This document shows, in pieces, positions 11,258-46,800 of a stretch of DNA of 64,000 nucleotides (its first letter is position 1; each line of letters begins with the position of its first letter). The notes under the pieces were generated by a model. The model was given only the letters and a program-made list of their open reading frames with translations. It was not told the DNA's origin and ran no database searches. The position numbers and the translations under genes were made by a program. The stretch covers positions 186,001 through 250,000 of the IMG/VR virus record IMGVR_UViG_3300011113_000640; one strand, written 5' to 3'.

Positions 11258-11262
11258 AATTA

Positions 11263-11270
11263 TATTTATA
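11263..11270 (-). promoter_or_regulatory. Perfect T4 late promoter TATAAATA
   Basis: TATAAATA-TAATT-ATG(11257). Confidence 0.75.
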
Positions 11271-11282
11271 GAGGTAAAATCC

Positions 11283-12122
11283 ATGAATCCTACGAATCCA
11301 CTCAAGCAGTATTTCCGGCAACCTGCTATCTACATACGCCTGCCCAGCCAAGGACAGGGCTATGCAGCCGGTGCTATAACAATGCCGCCCACAGGCGAAT
11401 TGGCTGTGTATCCCATGACAGCCATAGACGAAATCACTTATAGAACACCAGATGCACTCTACAACGGCCAGGCCACTGTGAGTGTTATACAAAGCTGTGT
11501 GCCCGAAATCAAGGATGCCTGGTCGCTGCCCTCAGTGGATCTGGACACCATCTTGGTGGCCATACGGGTCGCCACCTACGGACATGAAATGGATTTTGGT
11601 ACTACCTGCCCCAAGTGCAAAAACGAGTCAGAACATACCTTGGATCTGCGCACAGTGCTGGACAATTTGCGCACAGCAGACTACAGCCAGACCGTAAAGT
11701 CTGGAGACATGGAGATATTTTTCCGTCCGCTCAACTACAAAAACATCAACGACAACAATCAAGCACAGTTTGAAAATCAAAAACTACTGCAGGCCTTGCC
11801 CGATACCGGTGTGCCCGATGCAGAAAAATTTGGGGCGCTCAGTGATGCACTCAAAAAGATCACCGAAATCACAGTCAACATCCTGGCACAAAGCATAGCC
11901 ACTATCAAGACACCACAGGCCTTGGTCACCGAACCTGAATTCATACAGGACTTTTTAAAAAACTGTGATCGCAACTTGTTCAATCAGATACGTGATTTTA
12001 TTATAGACCTCAAGACCAAAAGTGAGATGCAACCATTGAAAATAACTTGTGATGCCTGCAACAACCAATACGAGCAGGCCATAACCCTGGACATGTCCAG
12101 TTTTTTCGCGTCCGCCTCTTAG
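11283..12122 (+). CDS. gp26: Baseplate hub assembly chaperone, gp26-like
   Basis: NPLKQYFRQP, YPMTAIDEI, DLDTILVAIRVATYG, and CPKC/CDAC zinc motifs. GAGGT SD lies before ATG 11283. Confidence 0.8.
   Translation: MNPTNPLKQYFRQPAIYIRLPSQGQGYAAGAITMPPTGELAVYPMTAIDEITYRTPDALYNGQATVSVIQSCVPEIKDAWSLPSVDLDTILVAIRVATYGHEMDFGTTCPKCKNESEHTLDLRTVLDNLRTADYSQTVKSGDMEIFFRPLNYKNINDNNQAQFENQKLLQALPDTGVPDAEKFGALSDALKKITEITVNILAQSIATIKTPQALVTEPEFIQDFLKNCDRNLFNQIRDFIIDLKTKSEMQPLKITCDACNNQYEQAITLDMSSFFASAS
12101..12107 (+). other. Putative -1 programmed frameshift slippery site T TTT TTC
   Basis: In-frame X XXY YYZ heptamer ending four sense codons before the gp26-like stop. The -1 frame is open from here into the 12161 ORF. 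Confidence 0.6.
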
Positions 12123-12160
12123 TCTCTACCCCTGAGCAAATTGCCAAAATTGTAGATCAA

Positions 12161-12337
12161 ATGGAAAAAGAAACCCTTGACATGCGCAAAGAAGCCCTGC
12201 AAATGGCCTGGTACATGCGCGGCGGCCTGACCTACGACCAGGCTCTGCAACTCAGTGTCAGCGAGCGAACCTTGATCAACAATCTGATCAAGGACAATCT
12301 TGAAACAACCAAAAAATCTGGACTGCCGTTTTTCTGA
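12161..12337 (+). CDS. Small gp51-like baseplate assembly protein (58 aa, MEKETLDMRKEALQMAWYMRGGLTYDQALQLS...), probably the -1 frame extension of gp26
   Basis: Translated by hand because it is below the ORF track cut-off. Its stop overlaps the next ATG; no SD. Confidence 0.7.
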   Translation: MEKETLDMRKEALQMAWYMRGGLTYDQALQLSVSERTLINNLIKDNLETTKKSGLPFF

Positions 12338-12840
12338 TGCTAGACCTAGAACGAGTCACCTACGACATAGAACGCTGGATCGCAAACTTTGTAGAAGTTC
12401 CACATCCAAGTCTGGGTGGCTGGGCTCCGTGTCCTTATGCCAGAAAGGCCAGGCTGGATCGTGACTTTGAAGTCAGGCTGGGTGTGAATCCTTATTTTGA
12501 TTTGAAAGTTGTTGCTCAAACTGGCATTGCCAAAAGTGTTGTAATTTTTGTTTACGAATCAACAGCTTACAACTACGAGCAGTTCCATGCTCACGTTGAG
12601 TCAGCCAACACAGAATTTTTATTGGGACAAGACCTGCTGGCCTTGGAGGATCATCCCGACAGTGCCGAGATAGTCAACGGTGTGAGCATGAATCAAGGTA
12701 CCTATGCCTTGGCCTTGGTACAATGTCTCAGCGACTTGGACAACAAAGCGCAGTTGATGGCCGGCAAGGGATTTTACGAGACTTGGCCAGAAGATTACTT
12801 GCACGAATTGTTCCAGCACAGAAAGGATCCCAGATCATGA
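12337..12840 (+). CDS. DUF1415-like hypothetical protein
   Basis: WIANFVE...PCPYARKA and EDHPD motifs resemble DUF1415-type proteins. Translationally coupled. Confidence 0.55.
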   Translation: MLDLERVTYDIERWIANFVEVPHPSLGGWAPCPYARKARLDRDFEVRLGVNPYFDLKVVAQTGIAKSVVIFVYESTAYNYEQFHAHVESANTEFLLGQDLLALEDHPDSAEIVNGVSMNQGTYALALVQCLSDLDNKAQLMAGKGFYETWPEDYLHELFQHRKDPRS

Positions 12841-31478: not shown

Positions 31479-34400
31479 ATGGCCACAACGTCTAGACAAA
31501 CAGCGATTTTTGGTGTAGAAGATTGGAAGCAGATCTATCAAACCTATCAAGAAGCCAACTTTCAAAGCTATGATTTTGAAACACTGCGCAAGACTTTTGT
31601 GGATTATTTGCGCACCTACTATCCAGAAACATTCAACGACTACATTGAAAGTTCAGAATTCATTGCCTTGCTGGATGTCATGGCATTTATGGGCCAGGCC
31701 CTGGCTTTCCGCACAGATCTCAACACCAGAGAAAACTATTTAGACACTGCCGAGCGTCGCGACAGTGTGGTCAAGCTGGCCAACTTGGTAAGTTATAGTC
31801 CCAAGCGAAATACCGAAGCTTCGGGCTTGCTCAAGGTATTCAGCATTTCTACTACAGAAAACATCATAGACTTTACTGGAGCTAATCTGGCCAACATCAC
31901 GGTCAACTGGGCCGACCCTACAAATTTAAACTGGCAAGAACAGTTTACCACCATCTTGAATGCGGCCTTGGTCAACACACAAAAATTTGGTAACCCCGGT
32001 GCAAATCAAGTCATCCTGGGAGTTGACACACAAGAATATACCATAAACCTGGTTCCTGGATACTTGCCGGTCATACCCTATACCTCCACCATAGACACAG
32101 TCAACATGCCATTTGAAGTGGTCAGTAGCACCACCTTGGGCGAAAATTTCATCTACGAACCTCCGCCTTTACCTAATGGTCAGTTCAACATCCTGTTTAG
32201 GAATGATCAACAGGGATTTCTTAGTGCCAACACTGGTTTCTTTTTCTTGTTCAAACAAGGAGTACTACAGAATCAAGATTTCAACTTGCCAGAACGCATA
32301 ACCAATCGTGCTGTGGCCATCAACATTGAAGGGGTAAACAACACTGATGTATGGTTGTATCAACTTGACAACGTGGGCAACATTTCCAACTATTGGCAAA
32401 AGGTACAAAGTGTTTATGCGGCAGCAGTTGAACAGTTGGCACCCGGAACAAGAAATATCTACAGTGTGACCAGCCGTACCAATGATCAGATCACTCTTAA
32501 CTTTGGCGACGGTGTGTTTTCTACCATACCAGTAGGTACCTTCCGTACCTATGTGCGTGCCAGCAATGGTCTTACCTACATTATCAACCCGGTAGAGATG
32601 CAAAGCGTGGCCATACCCATCAGTTATGTCAGCCGCACAGGGCAGATCGAAACCATGACTCTTACCTGTGGATTGACCAATCCTGTGACCAACGCCCAGG
32701 CACGCGAGACCATAACCACCATCAAACAACGAGCACCTGCACAATATTACACACAGAACAGGATGGTCAACGGTGAAGACTATTCGCAGTTTCCATTCAC
32801 ACAATACAACAGTATTTTAAAAAGCACAGCCGTCAATCGTGCCAGCATTGGTACCAGCCGTTATCTCGATCTAGTGGACCCCACTGGAAAATATTCCAGC
32901 ACCGACATTTTTGCCAGCGATGGCGCACTATGGGAAAGCAATGATCTCTATAGCTTTCAATTTTCTTGGTTGACTACCAACGATATTTCAGATGCTGTAA
33001 TCAACCAGATCTCGCCCTTGGCGTTGCGTGCAGGGCTACAACAATTTTACTATGCCAATTATGTCAGACCCAATTTAGCAGTGCTGAATTTTACTTGGAA
33101 TCAAAGCACAGTGCTGACCAATGAGACCACGGGCTATTTTCAAAACGCAGCCGGCAATCCTGTGCCCATTGGTATCTTTACCAGCAACAATGCCAAATAC
33201 ATAACAGAACGAAGCCTGGTACAATTTGCTGCACCCACTGGCTTTTACTTCGACGCAAACAATCACCTGGTGGTAGGAGTCCCCACACGTGCCGATGACA
33301 AGCTGACCATATGGGCCAGCCCCACCGCGGTGTACGAAGCCGGCAATGCCCAGGGCTATGGCAATCTTCCGTCTGGAGTGGGTCCTGTGGTACTCAACAA
33401 TTACGTGCCCACAGGTGCTATACCTGTGCAGGTCATTCCGGTTTTTATCACTGACATTCCTGTGTCTGTGCAACAAAGCATAGTATCACAGATAGCATTG
33501 AATCAGAATTTTGGACTGGGATATAATAATCTCACAGCTACCTGGTATGTGATCACTTCCAATAATCTAGCAACAAATGCTGCATTTAGCTTGGCCAATG
33601 CCCAAAGCACAACTGGAACCAACCAGGATGCCAGTTGGTTGGTACAGGCCACCTACAATGGAACAAGCTACACCGTGGTATCCAGGAGTCTAGATTATTT
33701 CTTTGGCAGTGTATTACAGACAAGATTTTTCTTTTATACCAGCGATCCCATCTACGACAGCAGGACCGGCACTGTGATCAGTGACTATGTGAACATACTT
33801 AAAATCAACACACAACCAGATTTGGCTGAGCCATTGGGATCTGACACAGTGTTGAACATAATAGATCAACCTGTGCTCAGTGATGGACTGGTGGACGATT
33901 TCCAGGTTGTGGTCAGTTTTGCCCAGGCACCCGACAATCTCACTCCAGTGAATCCAGACTTCTTTACTGATATAGTGGCACCCACAGTGGATGCCAATTC
34001 TAAATTGGTTTTCTTTGAAGCCACAGTGGATTTTGACAACCTACAGCGTTTCCTGTTGCTGGAACCTGGTGTGGTCAACAGTGATTATGCCACAAAAACC
34101 GCCATACAAGCTGTACAGACTCAATATGTCACAGGACAAGTTTTCTATGCCTATAGCGAGGGAAATTTCTATGTGTTGAGTCTAGACAGTCTAGGTGATC
34201 CTACCTTGCTTTCAAGCACAAATTATTTGGCAAAAACAGGCAGACAAGACTTGTATTTCCAATACAGACACAATAGTCCGTTGACCAGTAGAATCGATCC
34301 AGGCAGTACCAACATCATCGATGCCTATGTGGTCACCAATGCTTACTATACTGCTTATATCAATTGGTTGCAAGATACCACAGGCACAGTTGTTGAACCT

Positions 34401-34883
34401 TTGCCTCCTACCATCGATGAATTAAACACGGCCTATCAAGGACTACAAGATTTCAAGATGTTGTCTGACAACATGATCCTCAACAGCGTGGATTTTCAAC
34501 CCTTGTTTGGGCAAAAGGCCGACCCAGCCTTGCGTGGAATAATCAAGGTCATACGTGCAGCTGGTAGCACAGCCAGTGTAAGTACCATAAAAAATCTTGT
34601 GCTGGCCAATCTCAATGCATTTTTTGATATAGCTAACTGGAACTTTGGCGACACCTTTTATTTCAGCGAACTATCGGCCTACATACATCAAAACATTGGT
34701 GACACCGTCAGCAGTGTGGTCTTGGTTCCACTTAATACACAAAAGAGCTTTGGTGACTTGTACGAGATAAGATGTGCCCCCAATCAGATTTTTGTCAACG
34801 GTGCCACGGTCAATGACATTGAAGTGATCACTGCTTTGACCAGCACCAATCTGCAGACTGCTCCTGGTAGTGGAGTGATTTAA
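31479..34883 (+). CDS. gp6: Baseplate wedge protein, gp6-like
   Basis: YDFETLR, ENYLDTAERRDSV..LA..VSY.PKR, FGDG, ET...IKQRAP..YYTQNRMVNGEDY. Confidence 0.9.
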   Translation: MATTSRQTAIFGVEDWKQIYQTYQEANFQSYDFETLRKTFVDYLRTYYPETFNDYIESSEFIALLDVMAFMGQALAFRTDLNTRENYLDTAERRDSVVKLANLVSYSPKRNTEASGLLKVFSISTTENIIDFTGANLANITVNWADPTNLNWQEQFTTILNAALVNTQKFGNPGANQVILGVDTQEYTINLVPGYLPVIPYTSTIDTVNMPFEVVSSTTLGENFIYEPPPLPNGQFNILFRNDQQGFLSANTGFFFLFKQGVLQNQDFNLPERITNRAVAINIEGVNNTDVWLYQLDNVGNISNYWQKVQSVYAAAVEQLAPGTRNIYSVTSRTNDQITLNFGDGVFSTIPVGTFRTYVRASNGLTYIINPVEMQSVAIPISYVSRTGQIETMTLTCGLTNPVTNAQARETITTIKQRAPAQYYTQNRMVNGEDYSQFPFTQYNSILKSTAVNRASIGTSRYLDLVDPTGKYSSTDIFASDGALWESNDLYSFQFSWLTTNDISDAVINQISPLALRAGLQQFYYANYVRPNLAVLNFTWNQSTVLTNETTGYFQNAAGNPVPIGIFTSNNAKYITERSLVQFAAPTGFYFDANNHLVVGVPTRADDKLTIWASPTAVYEAGNAQGYGNLPSGVGPVVLNNYVPTGAIPVQVIPVFITDIPVSVQQSIVSQIALNQNFGLGYNNLTATWYVITSNNLATNAAFSLANAQSTTGTNQDASWLVQATYNGTSYTVVSRSLDYFFGSVLQTRFFFYTSDPIYDSRTGTVISDYVNILKINTQPDLAEPLGSDTVLNIIDQPVLSDGLVDDFQVVVSFAQAPDNLTPVNPDFFTDIVAPTVDANSKLVFFEATVDFDNLQRFLLLEPGVVNSDYATKTAIQAVQTQYVTGQVFYAYSEGNFYVLSLDSLGDPTLLSSTNYLAKTGRQDLYFQYRHNSPLTSRIDPGSTNIIDAYVVTNAYYTAYINWLQDTTGTVVEPLPPTIDELNTAYQGLQDFKMLSDNMILNSVDFQPLFGQKADPALRGIIKVIRAAGSTASVSTIKNLVLANLNAFFDIANWNFGDTFYFSELSAYIHQNIGDTVSSVVLVPLNTQKSFGDLYEIRCAPNQIFVNGATVNDIEVITALTSTNLQTAPGSGVI

Positions 34884-37800
34884 TGGCCAAGCAAGTACGC
34901 AGTGTAGATTTTCTTCCAGAGATCTTCCAGACTCCGATCAACAAACAATTTTTGTCAGCCACGCTGGATCAGCTGATACAAAATCCTGAGTTCTCTCAAA
35001 CACAAGGCTTTGTGGGTCGGCGCATAGGCCCCGGAGTCAATGCCAATGACTACTATGTGATTGAACCTACCAAGACCCGTACTGACTATCAGTTAGAGCC
35101 CGGAGTAGTGCAGGTAGATCCAGACAACATTCAACAAGTGGTAGATGCCATAACCTATCCCGGAATCAACGATGGCCTGGGCACACAAGGCGCATATACC
35201 AACAACGCCGATCGCTTGTATACCAGCGATTATTATACTTGGGATCCATTTGTGGATTTTGACAAGTTTGTCAACTATGCACAATATTATTGGTTACCAG
35301 GAGGTCCCTTGCCCGTGGATGTCAGCAGCACTGAAATTCCACTCACAGACACTTTTACAGTGACACGAGCCAATGGTGCCTACACCATCACAGGTGCGAC
35401 CGGAACCAATCCAGAAATCACGCTGGCACGTGGAGGCAGTTATGAATTTAAGGTAGCACAAAACGCCCAAGAAACTGAAACATTTTCAGTTAGAAACGCT
35501 GACACCAGCAACTGGAACATAGACTTCCAGGCCAATCCTACCTTGACCTTGACACGTGGCAACACTTATGTGTTCAATCTCACACAGACATTTCCTTGGA
35601 GTTTTTGGATCAAGACCGAGGCCACTCTGGGCACCACCAACATCTATGATCCAACCTTGCCCAATGGCATCAAGGCCATCAGCAACAACGGTGCCGGCAC
35701 TGGCTTGATCACATTTACAGTGCCACAAACGGCACCTGATACCTTGTACTATGCCAACGATGTAGAATTCAACTTGCGTGGCCAGATCAACGTCATAGAC
35801 GCAACCCCCGGAACCGGTGCTGGTTTTTGGATACAAACAGATCCCGGTGTAAATGGACGTATTCCGTCTACGCCCAATATCAGCAGCCGACTTGGCACCG
35901 AACAAGGAGTGATCAACAACGGAGAAGATTTAGGTACTATTACATTCAATGTGCCTGCAGTGACCGCACAAGATTTTTACTTCAACATGCCTAACATAGG
36001 ACTAGTAGATGTGGTCACTGATCTAGGCTTCAATGATATCAATGGTGTGTACCTTGACGACTTTTTTGCTGCATATCCCACTGGTATAGATGGTACTACT
36101 AGTTTGCAAAATCTCACCTTGGTATTCCTTAGCCAGGATGCTAATCCGACCCCAGCAAATCTCTATGATCTCTGGCGCATTCAGTATTTGACCGACGTCA
36201 ATGGAACTTATTTTAATTTGCAATACGTTGAAAGCATTGATGTTGAAAACAAATTTGTGGTTGGATTTGGCGAGGTCACATCCAATACCAGTTGGTACAA
36301 GACCACCGACGGATGGTTTGAACAAATACCTTTGTTGACCGCAGATCGTGATGTGTTGTTTTATCAAGATGGTACTGACCCAGGAATATTTGGTCGCATA
36401 CGCTTGGTAGATGCTGTGGGATCGCCTTTGCCTGTCAACGAAATCATTGGCGCCAAGAACTACACAAGTCCCAATGGAGTCGCATTCAGCAACGGAATGA
36501 AAGTGGTATTCCGTGGTCCTGTGACACCTGCCTCTTATCAAAACAACGAATACTATGTGGAAGGTGTAGGAACGGCCATTCAACTATTGCTGACTGATGA
36601 ATTTGTAACTCCAGAAACTTATACTCAATCAGCTTTGGTACCATATGATACTACTCCGTATGACACTGACCCTTTTGATGACAGCCTAAACCAACCTCTA
36701 GTACCGGATTATCTCACCATCAACCGTGCCAGTCCAGATCTCAATGCCTGGACCCGAAGCAATCGTTGGTTTCACATAGACGTAATCAACGCATCTGCGG
36801 CCTACAATAATTTTGTACCTACCCTGGACAATCGTTTTAGAGCACGCAGACCAATCTTGGAGTTCCGTGCAGGAACAAGATTGTATAATTCAGGCACGCA
36901 AGGCTTGCCACCTGTCAACCTAGTGGATCTTGTGACCACTGATGCCTTGAGCACAGTCAACGGTAGCCTTGGTTACAGTTCAGATGGTTACACTCTGCTT
37001 GATGGAAGTACGGTAATCTTTGCTGCAGACACAGACCCAGAAGTGCGCAATAAAGTTTATCAAGTACAGTTTGTTACTGTGGACACCAATGCAGAAGATT
37101 CTACCATAGTTGATGTGCCTGTGATAGTATTGACACCAATAGCCACAGCCCAAGTAGACAACACCGTGGTATGTTTGGACGGAATAGAATACCAGGGTTT
37201 CACATACTACTACGATGGGGCAGAATGGGTAGAAGCACAACTCAAAATCAGTGTCAATCAACCTCCGCTGTTTGATGTCTATGATACCAATGGCATAAGT
37301 TTCGGCAATCAAACCATTTATCCTAGTTCAAATTTCACAGGCAGTCCGTTGTTCAGTTATGCCATTGGGGATGCAGAGCCTGATTTGGTGCTGGGATTTC
37401 CTTTGACTTATCTCAGCTTGACCAATATAGGTGACATAGTATTTGACAACAACCTTTACAAGGACTCATTTTCATACACTGTAAACAGTCAAGGCCAATC
37501 TGTGCCTATCAGCACAGGTTTTGTAAGACAGTATTCTGATCGTTTGAACTATCAACGCGAGTTGGGCTGGCAAACAGGTATTACCTCCAGTCTGGTCCGT
37601 CAACAGTTCCGTTTTGTCTATGATGGTGCTCCTTTGTTGTTGGATGTGGCGGTAACTACCGATAACACAGTACCTGCCGTACAAATATTCATCAATGGAC
37701 TGTTTGTAGAATCCAATAATTATACCTACACCATTGGTACCAACACAACAACCATAAATTTCTCTACTACCTATGTGCCCAGCGATGTGATTGAAGTGTC

Positions 37801-40800
37801 GGTGTTGAGTGACCAGATCAGTGTGCAAGGATTTTATCAGGTTCCTATGAATCTCAGCAACAATCCCTTGAACGGCAACAGTGATCAATTTACTCTAGGA
37901 ACTATAAGGAATCACTACAGCACCATTGGTCAAAATTTGGTAGATCTCACAGGTCCTGTGATTGGTGCCAACAACAGCCGAGACCTTGGCAACATTGTGC
38001 CCTACGGTCTGCAGATACTACAACAAAGTTCGCCTTTGACCCTGACCGGTTATTTCATGCGCGATCGCAGTTACAATATTTTTGCATCCTTGGCCTACAA
38101 CAGCGGAGAATATGTCAGCTTCAAGGAACAATTACTCAGTGCGGTGTCCACTTTTGGCATAGCCGACTATGGCAACTGGAGCACGGCCACATTACTGGAC
38201 AACTGCATAGCCAAGATTACCTCGGGTCGCACCAACCTTAACAGTTTTTATTGGAGCGACATGTTGCCCACAGGCACCACGTTTGTGTCCAACAGTTACA
38301 CCGTAAATCCTATAACCACCAATCGATTCAATTTGATCCAGAGCTATGATTTTACCACATCAAACTATCAAGGCTTGTGCGTTTACATCAACAATGTGAT
38401 TCTGGTGCGTGGCCGTGACTATGTGGTCAGCACCGAAGGACCTACACTCACTATCACAGTAACATTGAACATTGGTGACGTGGTCGTCATCAATGAATAC
38501 ACCGACACGGCTGGTAATTTTGTACCCAACACACCGACCAAACTGGGACTTTATCCCAAGTATGAACCGCGTTATTTCTATGACACCAACTATGTGAATC
38601 CTACCTGGGTCATACAAGGACACGATGGATCAATCACTGTGGCCTTTGGCACACCCACCGAACCAGATCCTAGAGACGCTGTGTTGCTGGAATTTGAAAC
38701 CAGGATCTACAGCAACCTCAAAAATGATGGCAATCCTCCACCCCTGGTGGCCGAAGATGTGATTCCTGGCTATTTCAGAACCACTGATTATACCGCCGCA
38801 GAAACAACCACTATTTTGGGCGAAAGTTTCTTGACCTGGGTGGGCGCCAACAAGTTGGATTACACACAACAAACCTACCAGGTCACAAACGAATTTACCT
38901 ACAACTACAGCCAAGCCGCCAACAGACTAGACAATCAACCCTTGTTGGGCGCATGGCGTGGTATCTATAGATATTTCTATGACACACTCACACCCAACTC
39001 CACTCCTTGGGAAATGTTGGGTTTCAGCGAACAACCCATCTGGTGGGAAGACCAGTATGGTCCAGCACCTTACACCAGCGACAACTTGGTGCTGTGGGGC
39101 GACCTTGAGGCCGGCCTGGTCAACGATCCAGTGGCACCGTATGTGATACCCAAATATCGTAGACCTGGACTTACTTCGGTGATTCCTGTGGATGATCAAG
39201 GACAACTACTGCCTCCATTCTACAGCGTGATGGGGGCATACAACCCTCAAGGATTCCAGAAAAGTTGGCAGGTCGGCGATGGTGGCCCAGTAGAAGCTTC
39301 GTGGTGGCAGAGCTCAAATTATCCATTTGCTGTCATGCGATTGTTGTTGCTTACAAGACCAGCACAGTTTTTCAGCCTGTTTGCTGATCGTGATCTCTAC
39401 AGATACGATGTTGAATTTGATCAGTATCTCTACAATGGCCGCTATCGATTAAGACCCCAGGACATCCAAGTCTATGGCAATGGAGTCAGCAAGGCCAGTT
39501 ACATAAACTGGATAGTGGATTACAACCAACAGTGGGCAGTCAACAGCACCAGCGCATTGACCACAGATTTGAGTAATATTGATGTGCGTTTGTGTTATCG
39601 TTTTGCTTCGTTTGTGACAGGATCAAACCTAAGACTGTTTTTAGAAAAAGGCGCACCACAAAGTGAGAATGACAGCTTGTTGATACCGCCTGAAAGTTAC
39701 AACCTATTTGTTTATAAAAATCAACCAGCCAATCGTCTGAACTACAGTGCCGTGGTCGTAGAAATTGTTGAAGGTGGCTACAGTGTGTACGGATACAGTA
39801 CCACAGATCCTTATTTCAGCATTTATTCCAGCCGCACAGCCGGCACTGGACAAACTATCAGTGCCGGAGGTTACAGTGTGACAGTGCCGGCCGAATACAG
39901 TTCTACTGTGATTGAAATTCCTTATGGTTACACATTTACCAGCCGTGCCAGCGTGGTAGATTTCTTGCTCAGCTATGGCAAATATTTAGAAGGCCAGGGT
40001 CTCAGTTTTGTAGTGCAGGAAAATGGTTATACTTTGAACTGGGCACAAATGGCTCAGGAATTCCTTTACTATGCTGGACAAGGTTGGACCACAGGCACCA
40101 TAATAAATCTCAATCCGTCGGCCACACAGATACAGGCCTTGAAACCCGGGGCTGTGGTTGATTCTCTACAGACATACACGCCTGAAAATCTCATACAGGA
40201 TCAGAATCGTAGAGAATTGCCGGCCAAGAATCTCATAATCTATAGACAGGACAACACTTTCCAACTCAATCCTGATCCAGCCGGCAATCAAACTGTGAGT
40301 TATCTACAATTACAGTTTACGGATCTTGAAGACATCTTGATCCTGAACAATCGCACCATATTCAATGATCTGATCTATGACACTGTCACAGCTGAGAGAC
40401 AACAACGCCTGCGGTTGGCTGCTACCACCAGCACACAGTGGAATGGAACTCTCAATGCTCAGGGTTTCATACTGAACCAAAACAATGTGGTAGCTTGGCA
40501 ACCCAATGAGAAATATACCAAGGGCGAAATTGTATTATACAAAAACAATTATTGGCAAGCAGCTGCCTTGGTCCAGCCCAAGGAAAAATTCGAGTATTCT
40601 GATTGGTACAAGAGCAACTTTGATCGAATCCAACAGGGATTGTTACAGAACCTGGCAACCAAGGCCGATCAGTTGGCCAACAGCTACAATACTCAAACGG
40701 CCAATCTCAACCGAGACAACGATCTATTGGCCTATGGGCTGATAGGATTCCAGCCAAGACAGTACATGATAGATCTCAATCTCACTGATACTAGTCAGGT

Positions 40801-43800
40801 CGGTTTGTATCAACAGTTTATCAAGACCATGGGTAGCCGTCGTGCCACGCAGTTGTTGACACAGGCCAACTTGAATCCCTTGACCGCACAATACAATATC
40901 TATGAAACCTGGGGCATATTGGTCGGCACCTATGGAGCACAGGCCAATCGCAGCTGGTTTGAGGTCGATCTTGATGAAGCCTTGTTGAGTGGCAACCCGA
41001 GCACATTCCAAATAATAGAACCTGGGCAAACCACAGAAGCCAATCAAGCAATTCTGTTGCAAAATCTCTGGGCTGAAAGCTATGCCATACCCAACACCAA
41101 CATACTGCCTACTACCTATTCGAGAAATCTAGACACTGCTTTGCCATCGGCCGGCTATGTCAATGTCAATGATGTTGATATCACAGTGTTCAACTTGAAT
41201 GACCCTACCAACATAGCTGCCAATCTTTCTCGCATAGGTTTAGGCACCCGTATTTGGGTAGCACAAGACAACAGCTACGATTGGAACATTTACCAGTGTG
41301 CTCAAGTGCCAGGTCGTTTGACATCAATATCAGACAATCTCAACGGTACCTCTCGCGCCACATTTAGTTCACAGATCAGTCTTGTTCGCGGTGATCTTAT
41401 CATCATCAGATATTTCAGTGATTTGGTAGATGGTGTGTATCGAGTACTCAGTGTGCCTAACATAAACTCCGTGGTCATAGAATATGCTTTTGTCAATACC
41501 AATCAAACCACACTGACCGGTACAGGGTTAGCATTCTATCTCCAGACCATGCGTGTGGCTCAGGCCAGCGATGTTATCACGTTGCCGTACGCAAACCAAC
41601 TGATTCCAGGAGCACAGGTCTGGGTCGACGACAACGGTTCTGGACACTGGACAGTGCTGGAAAAAACTGATCCTTTCCAACCCACACAGGCATTGACAAA
41701 CCCAAATCAAGGTGTCAATTCTAGATTTGGCGCCAGCGTAGCACAGTCCAGCAACCATTTCTCGATGGTGGCCGGAGCCCCCAATGATGAATCAGGTGAT
41801 GGTGCTGTTTACACTTATCGTATAAATCTTTTCAATCAATACGTGGAAAACGTCATACTGTTTTTGATAGCAACTGGTGCGGCAGGGTATGGCAACAGTG
41901 TGGACTTTGGAGACAGGACCTGGGCAGTGGCTGGTGCCAGTGCCAGCAACGGCGGAACCGGCTATGTGACACCGATCTATCTTGTGCCCGGCAGCAATAC
42001 ATTCTTACAAACTCAACTGTTGGTGGCTCCGGACCCTGACTACAGCACCATCAGTGAATTTGGAGCTGCAGTCAAACTCAGTGGTGACGAACGCTGGTTG
42101 TATGTGGGCGCACCAGCTACCAACACTGTGTATGCCTATGCCCGAGTAGACATACCGCAACAATCTGCGACCTATACAGCCAATGGCACAACTCAGAGTT
42201 TCAACTGGTCAAACACAATACAGATAGATTACACCAAGCCCGACCAGATGATCGTGGTTGTCAACAACACCGTGCAACAATACGGCACAGATTATACACT
42301 GACCAACAATTTGGTATCATTTTCCTCTGTGCCTACGCTCAACAACCAGATCAAATTCACCCGTCGCACGTTCAAACAGCTAGACTCAAACACCTACCTC
42401 AACGTGACTCAAAACAGTGCCACTGGATCTGGTTCAGGAGCTAGATTTACTGTGACCAATACACGTGGCGATTATCAGGTCAGTATCACCGCACCTGGCA
42501 CCAGTTATGCTCCAGGCGATCAGCTGACAATCAGTTATACTCAGGTTGATCCTATTGGAAGCGCGGCCAACAATTTGATCATCACTGTGGTTTCCGTGGT
42601 CAGTGGAGGAATCACAGGGTTTACCACAGCAGGCAGCGGGGTTGGCAACACTGCTGTGTTTGATCTGTCAGACTCATTGTATACAGCCACCAACATATGG
42701 TCATTTACAGTCACAGTCAATGGAGTATTGCAACGTCCATACCTGGATTATACCTTTGCAGGAACCACTATTACTTTTGTCACAGTGCCACCAGCTGAAG
42801 CAGTGATTTACGTTGACAGTGCCAGCCAGGGAGCTTATTGGCAGTACGTGGACCAAATGCAAGTGGCCGGCATAGATGCCAACGCAACTCTTGGCGCCAG
42901 CATAACCACAGACGGTCTTGGACGTCAGATACTGTTGGGTGCACCGCAGGCATCGGCCGACGATGCCGAGGGCGATCCCATAGCCAATGCCGGTGCTGTG
43001 TATGCGTTTGATCGCAGCGTGTACAGATATATTGTTGACAACTCAACACAGCTGACCTATGCCATACCGGGCACATTGACCGGTCCAATAGCAGTGAGAT
43101 TAAACAGCCAATATCTCACCAACTCGGCACAATACATCAACGGCGAATTCACAGTATCGGGTTCTAACGTAGTGCTATCTAGCTCGGTGGCATTGACCGT
43201 GGGCGATTTTTTAGAAATTGAAACCAATCAATTCCAACAGTTGCAAAAGTTTGCCAGCAACACAGTGATAGACGAAAGCCAATTTGGCGCTAGCCTTGAT
43301 ATATGTTCCAACAGTTGCAGTCTGTATGTTGGAGCACCCAAAGACACCTACGCTTCCGAGGTCATACAGTCAGGCATGGTCCAGCGCCAGGTCAATCAAT
43401 CAAGGATCTATGGAATTATCTCCAGCACCATAGCTAACCCAAGTCTTACCTCGGGTGATACCATCAGGATAAATCTTGAACTGGTTGCTGTTCCAGCATC
43501 ACCCAACAACACTGTGGCAGGTCTAGCGGATGCTATAAATTCTTCAGGCATACCCAATGTCAGAGCAACCCCCACCGCAGATGTTTATTACATTGGTGAT
43601 GGCAACACCAAGATCTACAGCATAGGCAATATGTATTCAGCGGCCGAGTCTTATACTTCGGTAGTTTATGTCAACGACGTGTTGCAAACACAGGGCGTGA
43701 ACTATACTTACAACAACACCACTCAAGAAATAAGTTTTGTTACAGCCCCGGCTCTTGATGCCAGCATACAAATAGTGTCAGGTCGTTTGGTTCTAACAGT

Positions 43801-46800
43801 GATCAATGCTGCAGCTGCCGTGGAGTTTGACAAACTCACTGTGTTACCGGGAACATCTGGCACGGCCTTTGATGATCTGGGATTTGTGACTTATGCCTAC
43901 ACACAGACCATAGTAAGCCCCAACCCCACGGACTATGCCAATTTTGGCACCAGCCTCAGCGTCAACACCGGCGCGGTCAATCTCGTGGTTGGCGCCCCCA
44001 ATGGCGATGTGTATGAACCAGTTATCTTTGACAACGGCAACACATATTTTGACGATCGTAGCACCACATTCTTTGACTACACAGTGAATTCTGGGGTGGT
44101 TTACACCTATGATTTCCTGCCCAGCGCCACTACTAGTCTAGCCAACCCTGGAAAATTTGTGTTTGGACAACAGGTATATGTTGACAACATGGCCGCCCTG
44201 GATCAGTTTGGATTCTCTGTGAACTACCGAAGTGGTAGATTGACAGTGGGTTCTCCCGGTGCTGACTTTGGGGACAGCACAGCAAATTATGGTGGAGTAT
44301 ATGTGTTAGACAATGCCGACAATGACTCGGTATGGAAACCGATTTACACCCAATTGCCAGTTGTTGACGTCGATCTGTTGAATTCTGTGTATTCTTACAA
44401 CAAGTTTTTGGGTAGCACCCAGACTTATTTTGACTATATTGACCCATTGCAAGGCAAAATACTCGGGGTTGCCCGCAGAAACATAGACTATATTGGCGCA
44501 GTAGATCCTGCCAGCTACAACGCCGGTCCGGTGCACAATATTGGCACCAGTTGGGGAGCTGCGAATGTGGGAGAAATTTGGTGGGATACCAACACAGTGA
44601 GATTTATTGATGCCAATCAAGACAATCTGGTCTATGCCAGCCGACAGTGGGGACAGGTTTTTCCTGGCAGCGTGATTGACATTTATCAATGGACAGCCAG
44701 CGACACGGCCCCAGCCAACTACACTGGTCCTGGTGTGCCCTTGAGCACAGTTAGTTACACGGTAAGATCGGCCCTAAATGATCAAGGGATCATTGTCACT
44801 ACCTACTATTTCTGGGTCAAAGGCATAACGACCACTGCTGCTCAGTATGGCAAAACCTTGAGCCCAGTGGCCATAGCCTCATACATCTTGAATCCTATCA
44901 GCAGTGGCCTGCCTTACATAGCCGCTATCAATGCCAACTCGGTGGCGCTTTACAATGCGGCAGGACTTTTATCGGCCAACGACACTATCTTGCATGTGGA
45001 ATATGATCGCCAGGCCGCCGGTGGTGGCAATGACATCCATACCGAATACGAATTCATAGGTCAGGGCAAGGCCAACGACTTTTTGAATCCAAACCTGTAT
45101 CGAAAGTACCTGGACAGTTTCTGCGGTGTGACCACATCTGGAGCAGCTGTACCAGACCCATTGTTGAGCCCAGGCATGCGTTATGGTCTACAGTTCCGTC
45201 CACGCCAAAGCATGTTTGTCGATCGTTTCCAGGCTTTGGAAAATTATCTTAGCTACTGCAACAAGATCTTGGCACAGTATCCTATCACAGAAATACGCAC
45301 ATTCAATCTCTTGAACAGTCAAGAGCCCACACCAGCAGCTAACTCGGGTGCCTGGGATTATCAGGTACCCAACCTTACCATACTGAGCTATCAGAACCTC
45401 AATACAGTGCCCTTGGGTTATCTATATCTAGTGGATTCAGACAGTGGGCAAGATGGACGCTGGACCATTTATGAAGTACAGGCCACATCCACTCCGGGTC
45501 AACGCACCTTGGCTCTGGTGCGTGTGCAGAACTATGACACACCCTTGTACTGGAATTATATTGATTGGTATCTGCCCGGTTACAACAACACCATACAGCC
45601 CGTGGCCACAGTGACCAACACAGCTGGCCTACAAACCTTGAGCTTGGACACAGCACCCATAGGTAGCAGTGTCAAGATCAGCAACAATGGGCAAGGCAAG
45701 TTTGAAGTGTACCTGCGTGTGGCTGCAGATCCTGTGACCGGTTGGCAACGGGTGGGACTTGAAGATGGAACCATAGCTATCAGTGAAGTAATCTGGAATT
45801 ATCCTGCTGGTGGGTTTGGGTTTGATGCTGAAGTGTTTGACGCACAGTATTTTGATCAAGAGCCAGTGATAGAAACCCGTTATATCCTGCGGGCTATCAA
45901 CGAAGAACTGTTTACTGGTGACTTATTGATTTTCAGGAATGAAGCACTCATGCTCATGTTCCAGTTTATATACACAGAGCAAGCCAGCCCTAGCTGGTTG
46001 ATTAAGACCAGTTATATTGAAGTGGATCATGTGGTGCGAGGCCTTTATCCGTATGAACTTTACCAACCCGACAATCAGACTTTTGTAGAGGATTACCTTA
46101 CCGAAGTCAAACCCTATCATGTGCAGACTTTAAACTTCAACCTAATCTATGAAGGTCTGGACACTTATCCAGGCGGAATAGCCGACTTTGACGTGCCAGC
46201 ATATTGGTTACCAGGACCAGCCTTGCCACAATTTGTGAGCCCGGTCCTAACACCTTACACTTACAGCGACAGCGTGGTACAAAGTTTGGTCAGTGATGCC
46301 GCCACAGATGCGCAAGTTTGGTTGACCTGGCCCTACTCCAATTGGTTCAACAACTATAGTCTCAGCTTAGACAGTGTTACAGTGTATGATACCACCACTG
46401 TATATGCAGACATTCCTGTGATCACCATTGGTCGTGATTGGCAGGCCAACACTGCATATGCACTGGGTCAACAAGTGTCCTATGGAACAAATTTATACAC
46501 AGTGGCCCAGGCAGGAACCACTGGGGACTCGGCACCCACATTTACCAATGGCAACAAAGCCAACGGGTCTGCCACACTGACCTATGCAGGCCTGCGAGCT
46601 CAAGGCACGGCTATACTATTTGCCAATGGAACCATAAGTCATGTCACTGTGACACAACCCGGCAATGGGTATTTGTTGACTCCTGATATAGGTATAAATG
46701 GAGTATTTCCTAATTTTGCCGCTGGAACTTTTGATGGTGCTGTGGCCAAACTACTTGCTGTCATGGGCAACAATCTGGTGCGCGATTTCTCTACTGTGAT

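Follow-up and report, generated by a model that had tools for sequence, protein, structure and literature searches.

A conserved predicted -1 frameshift in the gp26-like hub-chaperone gene of a jumbo phage

Production of nested assembly chaperones by a -1 ribosomal frameshift is a hallmark of long-tailed phages, and in lambda gpG/gpGT a slip on a heptamer a few codons before the stop of the short open reading frame makes a longer protein with the same N-terminus (Xu, Hendrix and Duda 2004, listed as a reference in PMC9024508). T4-type phages have been the prominent apparent exception, and T4 was reportedly thought to lack such a pair. T4 instead has gp26 and gp51, which are encoded by two separate, divergently transcribed and individually essential genes and are listed as baseplate hub assembly chaperones, with gp51 (the "catalyst") absent from virions (PMC3004832). 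We examined a locus with a predicted frameshift of this kind in a gp26-like gene in a window of 64,000 nucleotides (positions 186,001 to 250,000 of IMG/VR virus record IMGVR_UViG_3300011113_000640), part of a 320-kb jumbo myovirus genome with T4-like morphogenesis genes. An earlier note, made from the sequence alone, had proposed that a gp26-like gene here is fused to a small downstream gp51-like gene by a programmed -1 frameshift, as in lambda G/GT, next to a tape measure gene of a T4-like myovirus. Table 1 lists the features of the locus.

Table 1. Coordinates of the features discussed here (positions are those of the window).
Position	Strand	Feature	Size
11283..12122	+	0-frame ORF, gp26-like baseplate hub assembly protein (short product); stop TAG at 12120-12122	279 aa
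12101..12107	+	Slippery heptamer T TTT TTC in X XXY YYZ register, encoding the conserved FF	
12107..12337	+	-1 frame extension, predicted C-terminal helical module of the predicted 351-aa long product; stop TGA at 12335-12337	76 codons plus TGA
12161..12337	+	ATG-initiated ORF named in the earlier note; distal three-quarters of the extension, probably not an independent gene	58 aa
9161..11257	-	Divergent neighbour, probable tape measure protein (T4 gp29 analogue), 25 bp from the gp26-like start	698 aa
7276..9111	-	T4-type portal protein (gp20-like)	

Direct reading of the sequence bears out what the note had observed in every detail. The ATG of the 0-frame ORF has a GAGG Shine-Dalgarno sequence 8 nt upstream, and the frame ends ...AGT TTT TTC GCG TCC GCC TCT TAG (protein ...SSFFASAS). 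The -1 frame reads RVRLLVSTPEQIAKIVDQ and then MEKE..., has no stop from about 12050 to its TGA (it runs 71 codons past the 0-frame stop), and is in frame with the 58-aa ORF; no ATG, GTG or TTG lies in it between the heptamer and the ATG of that ORF, and no Shine-Dalgarno sequence precedes this ATG. The predicted fusion is thus 275 + 76 = 351 aa long. The arrangement is more than chance, since of 101 in-register heptamers in long open frames of the window this is the only one within 20 codons of its stop whose -1 frame runs 30 or more codons beyond it, and it is not an assembly error, since contigs from independent runs carry the same T6 run with no indel at the site.

The 279-aa protein belongs to Pfam family PF12322 (T4_baseplate, the gp26/gp51 family) with E 1.6e-16 and 61.1 bits against a gathering cut-off of 24.5 (residues 62-276), and it matches phrog_150 ("baseplate hub") at 2.7e-18. 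It has two CxxC pairs (CPKC at 109-112 and CDAC at 255-258, a Zn-ribbon) and FF at 274-275 at the end of the core; among relatives the four Cys are invariant in the long forms (below) and F274/F275 are near-invariant in the short forms. A related long form gave BFVD fold matches to "baseplate hub assembly protein, T4-like" at E 4.8e-20. The gp26-like gene of the window is the only PF12322 gene in the 320-kb genome, and phrog_634 ("hub assembly catalyst") has no match there. A DNA-level search of the phage collection with the locus found no match, and Pfam and PHROG scans of the 58-aa and 76-aa peptides found nothing meaningful.

The portal protein matches PF07230 at 4.8e-102, but support for the neighbouring tape measure is weak: the 698-aa protein matches phrog_10613 (TMP) only at E 0.004, its protein-language-model neighbours are TMP clusters at 0.93, and it occupies the orthologous position in PA5oct, 121Q and Serratia BF, where it is annotated as a virion structural protein. 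It has no significant match to T4 gp29 and no sequence match in PDB, so it is only a probable tape measure. The order portal <- probable TMP <- | -> gp26-like is the same in PA5oct, 121Q, Serratia BF and the metagenomic contig L036.

The note had named conservation of the heptamer and of the -1 coding signal in homologs as one check of its proposal, and both were found. In the 16 loci first examined (the window, nine IMG/VR loci, Atu_ph07, Phosso, Xoo-sp13, PA5oct, 121Q and Serratia BF) and in a further seven isolates (P-SSM2, S-PM2, HTVC008M, KVP40, phiM12, phiW-14 and RaK2), T TTT TT[CT] lies in register 7-40 nt before the stop and is followed by a 60-80 codon -1 ORF. Loci were then collected on a larger scale by two single-protein scans, as no stretch was conserved enough for an alignment-based search, and all 159 complete IMG/VR loci surveyed (103 unique contexts) have the same arrangement. 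Entropy is zero at the heptamer while flanking synonymous sites vary, and other FF dipeptides in the same loci are written T TTT TTY only 26-39% of the time. It must be noted that FF is conserved as protein, which by itself favours T-rich codons. Among the isolates checked from jumbo, cyanophage and other T4-related groups the exceptions are Vi01, which has only A ATT TTC, and RM378, in which the tail lies in the +1 frame after a T7 run.

The -1 frame is conserved as protein from the first post-slip codon (R-x-R-L-L), including the 18 codons upstream of the window's ATG, and substitutions in codons 6-18 follow the codon-position pattern 3>1>2 expected of coding sequence. The extension contains conserved W[YF]MRGG and TTKKSG.PFF motifs. 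Jumbo relatives have no conserved start codon; their first ATG falls at codon +4 to +36 after the slip (mostly the Met inside the W[YF]MRGG motif, 36 codons into the domain) or is absent, and the PA5oct extension has no Met and is unannotated. In cyanophages, however, a conserved ATG sits 3 codons after the slip site, so independent or coupled initiation is possible there. No conserved downstream stimulatory RNA structure was found, the fold of the window sequence being no better than shuffles (z +1.0) and a 7-sequence alignment yielding no consensus pairs, so frameshifting efficiency may be low.

Tblastn hits to the extension lie directly behind gp26 in the -1 frame of Atu_ph07 and Phosso. 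A profile search gave 398 relatives, and about 20 of the best 150 listed are in-frame C-termini of 319-351-aa proteins; all seven of these whose contigs were read carry PF12322. These natural long forms align with the predicted fusion without a gap at the junction (...LD.S..FR.K.L..PEE.) and have no T-run there. In 4 of 4 contigs with upstream sequence they follow, in tandem, a short PF12322 paralog; three of these paralogs end 2-4 residues after FF, and the fourth (L036) ends similarly short after a DY at that position. Two of the four keep the heptamer although their -1 frame stops at once. T4 gp26 (208 aa, ending ...EFFELL) and gp51 (249 aa) both hit PF12322 (8.8e-64 and 3.9e-52, respectively), and CP220 also has one short and one long in-frame gene. 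A tree places the T4 pair and the jumbo tandem pairs on opposite sides of a 100/100 split with frameshifting genes on both sides, and the duplications are therefore independent replacements.

The above observations support the note's interpretation only in part. A programmed -1 frameshift that joins the gp26-like ORF to the small downstream ORF in the style of G/GT has very strong comparative support, and the "gp51-like" label is right in spirit, since T4 gp51 is a PF12322 paralog of gp26 with an extra C-terminal tail and small ORFs in the same position are annotated gp51 in P-SSM2 and KVP40. However, it is the long product that resembles gp51, and not the 58-aa ORF as a separate gene, whose ATG is not conserved and whose coding region starts at the heptamer. 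In addition, similarity between this jumbo-type tail and the T4 gp51 tail is not significant, no sequence or fold relation to lambda G/GT-type chaperones was found, the tape measure is only probable, and the phage is not T4-like in the narrow sense.

Our best explanation, in which we have high confidence, is that this single PF12322 gene is decoded in two ways. In this view most ribosomes terminate at the TAG and make the short form, the equivalent of T4 gp26, while a minority slip back one base on U UUU UUC, where tRNA-Phe in the P and A sites would re-pair from UUU-UUC to UUU-UUU, and continue in the -1 frame from CGC at 12107 to make the 351-aa form, the equivalent of T4 gp51. The two nested proteins would then act together in assembling the central hub and tape-measure initiation complex, with the long form in low, "catalytic" amounts, as G and GT do in lambda. 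The heptamer, the open frame, their conservation, the coding signature, the missing start codon and the existence of the long architecture in frame elsewhere come from the sequence analysis itself, whereas the existence of the fusion protein, the ribosomal nature of the slip, its efficiency, the chaperone function and the tape-measure partner are inferred. Also in favour of this explanation, PA5oct gp336 lacks the virion-MS note that its neighbours carry.

Other explanations of the same sequences appear unlikely. The downstream ORF could be translated on its own, from its ATG or by termination-reinitiation after the gp26 stop, to give a free 58-aa gp51-like peptide, with the heptamer merely encoding the conserved FF. 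Public records do annotate it in this way (P-SSM2 gp51, KVP40.0327, 121Q gp595 and a Phosso ORF with an ATGA overlap), and besides the cyanophage ATG (above), Atu_ph07 and Phosso have an ATG 1 codon after the heptamer. On the other hand, the window has no start codon for 18 conserved codons, starts are variable or absent in jumbo relatives, the heptamer is invariant far beyond what coding for FF predicts, and the in-frame homologs and T4 gp51 show that the tail works as the C-terminus of a PF12322 protein. About equally unlikely is that the same fusion is made through RNA polymerase slippage that adds one U to a fraction of transcripts. The site is a homopolymer run (T6 here and T7-T8 in Xoo-sp13, phiM12 and HTVC008M), and the RM378 arrangement fits length heterogeneity as well as it fits ribosome slippage, but productive transcriptional slippage usually needs runs of about 8-9 or more, six is short, and the run is always held in X XXY YYZ register relative to the 0 frame, which matters for tRNA re-pairing but not for the polymerase.

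Least likely is that a sequencing or assembly indel has split a single 351-aa gene, or that the gene is a pseudogene; homopolymers are error-prone and in-frame homologs exist, but the same split with the same T6 run appears in over 170 independent loci, in isolates sequenced by many laboratories and in independent runs, and the in-frame forms belong to distinct lineages without a T-run at the junction and with a short paralog wherever upstream sequence could be read. This possibility is effectively refuted by the conservation.

A broader hypothesis, which we consider only slightly more likely than not, is that the T TTT TTC site is an ancient -1 programmed frameshift shared by much of the T4-related myovirus assemblage (the Kyanoviridae, KVP40, phiM12, phiW-14, and the RaK2-, PA5oct- and Atu_ph07-like jumbo phages) and replaced independently at least twice, probably three times, by a pair of short and long paralogs (T4 genes 26 and 51, the two CP220 genes, and tandem pairs in uncultured jumbo phages). 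This would make gp26/gp51 the functional counterpart of the G/GT chaperones, with the low-abundance, "catalytic" behaviour of gp51 corresponding to that of GT. The site would extend the nested-chaperone principle to an unrelated protein family and explain why T4 has two paralogous essential hub "chaperone/catalyst" genes, and it offers natural experiments in that, in this view, the frameshift, tandem duplicates and dispersed duplicates all show that both forms are needed. It would also correct the annotation of hundreds of phage genomes, where gp51 is called as a separate gene of 40-76 codons (e.g., 40 in Atu_ph07 and 76 in Phosso) or is missed, as in PA5oct, and it gives a testable handle on hub and tape-measure assembly in cultivable model phages. 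None of the 11 annotated records inspected joins the two ORFs, and the T4 tail review, the PA5oct paper and other full texts contain no mention of a gp26/gp51 frameshift, although subscription journals were outside this search and prior description cannot be excluded.

How does the locus compare with each described system? With T4 it shares the Pfam family, a short product that ends a few residues after FF as gp26 does, and a predicted long product that is the core plus a helical C-terminal tail as in gp51. T4, however, has two genes and no heptamer where there is here one gene plus recoding, and core identity to the T4 proteins is too low for BLAST to detect. The gp51 tail (residues 209-245) matches the cyanophage -1 extension profile at E 2e-5, so homology is significant for the cyanophage/KVP40-type tails, but for the jumbo type found in the window the corresponding value is E 3.4 (hhalign probability 2%). 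The jumbo-tail profile was not significant against the cyanophage tail either, BLASTP of the extension or the fusion against gp51 gave only a weak hit of doubtful position (E 0.05-1.4), and hhalign of the long-form alignment against gp51 aligned only the Zn-ribbon. We therefore do not claim homology of the two tail types. The small "gp51" ORFs of cyanophages and KVP40 have the same position, -1 frame and preceding T TTT TTC heptamer, and KVP40's annotators noted similarity to the C-terminus of T4 gp51, but those records treat the ORF as a separate gene starting at a conserved ATG.

The lambda-type tail assembly chaperones (TAC) differ in that Pfam and PHROG returned no TAC family for the window protein, Foldseek of the long form against PDB found nothing at E 0.001 or better, and an exhaustive structural search gave the HK97 chaperone (2ob9) at Z 3.9 and rmsd 4.2 Å, which is within noise. 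The window protein is also much larger (279/351 aa) and has a Zn-ribbon, and its gene is divergent from the probable tape measure rather than between tube and tape measure genes on one strand, although in KVP40 a tube-like gene, gp26, the extension and a gene for a 656-aa protein do lie in that order on one strand. Binding of the short form to the tape measure, and of the long form's extra domain to the tube or initiator, is assumed only by analogy, and a complex prediction of the 698-aa with the 279-aa protein gave no evidence either way. The resemblance to G/GT lies in two predicted nested products with a common N-terminus, a -1 slip on a heptamer a few codons before the stop of the short ORF, no apparent need for a stimulatory structure, a position beside the (probable) tape measure gene, and an inferred role as assembly factors rather than virion parts. 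E. coli dnaX (tau/gamma) likewise gives two nested proteins from one gene by a bacterial-type X XXY YYZ slip near a functional domain boundary, but there the shifted product is the shorter one, and the slip is boosted by an upstream Shine-Dalgarno-like element and a downstream hairpin.

The earlier note described a gp26-like ORF that ends in a slippery heptamer with a stop-free -1 frame behind it, and every factual statement in that description proved correct when we read the sequence directly. The viral record in which the window lies is 320,541 bp long and about 93% complete, and the 279-aa ORF, whose ATG has a GAGG 8 nt upstream, ends ...LDMSSFFASAS, its last codons being AGT TTT TTC GCG TCC GCC TCT TAG, so that T TTT TTC is a textbook X XXY YYZ heptamer in register. 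The -1 frame runs straight into the 58-aa ORF named in the note, and between the heptamer and the ATG of that ORF it contains no ATG, GTG or TTG, nor does a Shine-Dalgarno precede the ATG; a slip gives a predicted product of 275 + 76 = 351 aa. Among 101 in-register heptamers in long frames of the window, this is the only one that is close to its stop and has a long -1 continuation, and contigs from independent studies carry the same T6 run without an indel. The features of the window and of the comparison loci that bear on this arrangement are collected in the following table.

Coordinates of features in the window and in the loci with which it was compared (L numbers are our locus designations)
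Sequence	Position	Strand	Feature
Window	11258-11282		Divergent intergenic gap of 25 bp between the probable tape measure gene and the gp26-like gene
Window	11263-11270		TATTTATA, the reverse complement of the T4 late-promoter motif TATAAATA
Window	11283-12122	+	gp26-like ORF, 279 aa
Window	about 12050 to 12335-12337		Open -1 frame, ending in TGA at 12335-12337
Window	12087-12100		Perfect 14-nt palindrome, CTGGACATGTCCAG, directly 5' of the T-run
Window	12101-12107		Heptamer T TTT TTC
Window	12161		ATG of the 58-aa ORF in the -1 frame
Window	12335-12339		TGATG, overlap of the extension's stop with the ATG of the next ORF
Window	12337-12840		Next ORF, 167 aa, phrog_28122, unknown function
Window	31479-34883		ORF of 1,134 aa preceding the 4,921-codon frame
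Window	34883-49648	+	Single open reading frame of 4,921 codons (about 14.8 kb), which would be a giant protein of this jumbo phage
PA5oct (L014), NC_071039	3350-3561 of the locus (~77.65-77.86 kb)		73-codon -1 extension behind the 'baseplate hub' gene gp336
T4 (L017)	5803-6090		Gene 26', annotated internal in-frame product (95 aa, the C-terminal part of gp26)
Salmonella phage Vi01 (L027), NC_015296	~47.5 kb		gp26-like gene followed by a homologous -1 ORF (...SMPWHLDLL...)
Tandem short paralog (L031)	~1690		T TTT TTC retained at the FF motif
Tandem short paralog (L034)	~1275		T TTT TTC retained at the FF motif
Campylobacter phage CP220 (L205 and L207), FN667788	~11.2 kb and ~2.3 kb		Two dispersed PF12322 genes, one short (228 aa) and one long (244 aa)
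Rhodothermus phage RM378 (L206), NC_004735	~26.4 kb		PF12322 gene ending ...TCC TTT TTT TGG AAT AAG TTA TGA

The 279-aa protein belongs to PF12322 'T4_baseplate' (61 bits against a cut-off of 24.5) and to phrog_150 'baseplate hub', and it is the only PF12322 gene in the genome. Its nearest cultured relatives, at 28-36% identity, are jumbo myoviruses, namely Phosso, Atu_ph07, the PA5oct group, the 121Q/PBECO4/RaK2 group, and Serratia BF with its Erwinia relatives; about 5,350 metagenomic relatives exist, and the DNA sequencing runs that hold it are mostly freshwater or lake samples. Upstream and divergent lie a 698-aa protein and a T4-type portal (PF07230), and the same order occurs in PA5oct, 121Q, BF and the contig L036. 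The note took the 698-aa neighbour to be the tape measure, but it is only a probable one, since the evidence consists of a weak PHROG hit (E 0.004), tape-measure neighbours in a language-model search (0.93) and virion detection of the PA5oct ortholog, and there was no match to T4 gp29. At the other end of the arrangement, the overlap of the extension's stop with the next start codon suggests translational coupling of that next ORF to ribosomes in the -1 frame.

Conservation of the heptamer and of the -1 coding signal in homologs had been named beforehand as the test of a programmed frameshift, and we examined both. A tblastn search with the 76-aa -1 peptide found Atu_ph07 (6e-10), Phosso and Xoo-sp13, in each case immediately behind the gp26-like gene and in its -1 frame, and these three loci read CAT TTT TTC GCA TGA, CAT TTT TTC GAA TGA and GCT TTT TTT ATT..., respectively. 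All 16 loci first examined (the window, 9 IMG/VR loci and 6 isolates) have the heptamer in register 10-40 nt before the stop, with a -1 extension of 71-79 codons. The same holds outside the jumbo clade, where the extensions are 60-63 codons long, in the cyanophages P-SSM2 and S-PM2, the pelagiphage HTVC008M, Vibrio phage KVP40, Sinorhizobium phiM12 and Delftia phiW-14, and the jumbo phage RaK2 also has it; each of these genomes has a single PF12322 gene. Vi01, in contrast, has only A ATT TTC (its site reads GAA ATT TTC), which is not a perfect heptamer, and its -1 frame opens only at this point, so it may have a degenerate or one-tRNA slip site or a separate start. In RM378 the ~70-aa tail lies in the +1 frame after a T7 run, which could reflect a +1/-2 slip, transcriptional slippage, or a homopolymer error in an old sequence. 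A survey of 160 further IMG/VR loci gave T TTT TTC in 159 of the 159 complete loci, and across 52 and 51 unique 66-nt contexts the heptamer has zero entropy while neighbouring positions vary; other FF dipeptides in the same loci are written T TTT TTY in only 26% and 39% of cases.

The stretch between the heptamer and the window's ATG is coding. The first post-slip residues (R-x-R/T-L-L) are among the best conserved of the extension, and across 24 unique, gap-free extensions differences fall in the -1-frame codon-position order 3>1>2, which holds in codons 1-5, in codons 6-18 (before the window's ATG) and in codons 19-76. In the 56 unique jumbo-type loci the first ATG falls anywhere from codon +4 to codon +36 after the slip and is most often the Met inside the conserved W[YF]MRGG motif, and the window's own ATG at codon +18 is shared by only 4 of the 18 unique loci in its subgroup. 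In two loci, and in PA5oct, there is no ATG; the PA5oct extension contains no Met at all and is not annotated in RefSeq, and gp336 in front of it also lacks the virion-MS note that its two neighbours carry.

The long architecture also exists in frame. A profile of the extension, searched against 1.84 billion representative proteins, found 398 relatives, and about 20 of the best 150 are proteins of 319-351 aa with the domain at their extreme C-terminus. Their sequences align with the predicted frameshift product without a gap at the junction (...LDWSSSFRNKILTQTPEE... against ...LDMSSFFRVRLLVSTPEQ...), and their DNA has no T-run at that point. In all four contigs with enough upstream sequence the long gene is preceded in tandem by a short PF12322 paralog of 276-297 aa; three of these end 2-4 residues after FF, and the fourth (on L036, which keeps the synteny of portal, 775-aa protein, then short and long gene) ends similarly short but has DY at that position. 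These lineages therefore supply the short and long forms from two genes instead of one.

T4 presents a comparable case. T4 gp51 (249 aa) itself hits PF12322 (3.9e-52, residues 1-201), as does gp26 (8.8e-64), so the two are paralogs. gp26 ends ...EFFELL, three residues after FF, and T4 has no heptamer, while gp51 continues in frame with ...DVF-KLLVNPDEI.... A profile of cyanophage -1 extensions matches gp51 residues 209-245 at E 2e-5 in a 400-sequence database, a similarity that the annotators of KVP40 had already noted. The jumbo-type tail, however, is not significantly similar in sequence to the gp51/cyanophage-type tail, so the two are positional equivalents whose homology is unproven. Of the two CP220 genes, the long one has an in-frame gp51-like tail (...PFEREIF...) and neither has a heptamer, which looks like a further independent two-gene solution, as in T4. 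T4 also makes nested products from this family by another route, the internal product 26'. A maximum-likelihood tree (midpoint root only) separates with 100/100 support one clade that holds T4 gp26, gp51, KVP40, Vi01 and the cyanophages from another that holds the jumbo frameshifting genes and the tandem pairs; frameshifting genes occur in both clades, so the duplicated solutions arose independently. Because the same heptamer occupies the same position in both clades, the frameshift is most simply the ancestral state, although this is an inference.

Could the downstream ORF be translated from its own start, or could the heptamer be kept only because it encodes FF? An independent start cannot explain the jumbo clade, given the variable or absent ATG, but in cyanophages an ATG at codon +3 is invariant, so independent or coupled initiation remains possible there. 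Coding for FF alone can preserve the heptamer for some time, since the short paralogs at L031 and L034 retain it although their -1 frame stops within two codons; this may be a relic of the ancestral slip site or an effect of FF codon bias. No conserved RNA structure was found to follow the site, and the palindrome directly 5' of the T-run, which gives a terminator-like hairpin-plus-T6 look, is present only in the closest relatives (loci L004 and L006) and not in L005, L007 or L012, so it is probably a by-product of coding for LDMSS. The heptamer, the open -1 frame, their conservation and the codon-position signature are read from the sequences themselves, whereas for this uncultured phage the slip, the trans-frame protein and its role in assembly are inferred from sequence comparison alone. 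We are confident that a trans-frame long product is made by ribosomal slippage, and somewhat more so if transcriptional slippage is included as the route; whether it acts as a tape-measure and hub chaperone pair analogous to lambda G/GT we consider about as likely as not.

None of the 11 annotated records that we inspected joins the two ORFs, and full-text literature searches, which did not extend to subscription journals, found no description of this frameshift. Recoding in the G/GT style is already known; what appears to be new is its predicted occurrence in an unrelated, widely conserved chaperone family of T4-type and jumbo myoviruses.

An AlphaFold2 model of an in-frame long form (the protein P0145, using a 20-sequence alignment) is confident, at pLDDT 89 and pTM 0.85, and predicts an alpha/beta core with a Zn-ribbon built from the two CxxC pairs and a tail that forms helices at 262-271, 275-302, 309-313 and 317-337. 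The model matches many phage 'baseplate hub (assembly)' proteins in BFVD, with E down to 4.8e-20, but matches nothing in the PDB, and the HK97 tail assembly chaperone appears only at Z 3.9, within noise. T4 gp26 and gp51 are described as hub assembly chaperones, and gp51 is required for assembly but absent from the virion (PMC3004832); one GenBank record even labels a gp51 homolog 'tape measure protein assembly chaperone'. The earlier note's reading of the locus as a G/GT-style system in a T4-like myovirus is therefore supported in part: on comparative inference the system works like G/GT, with nested products, a -1 slip at the 3' end, a putative assembly factor and a position beside the probable tape measure, but it is not a member of that family.
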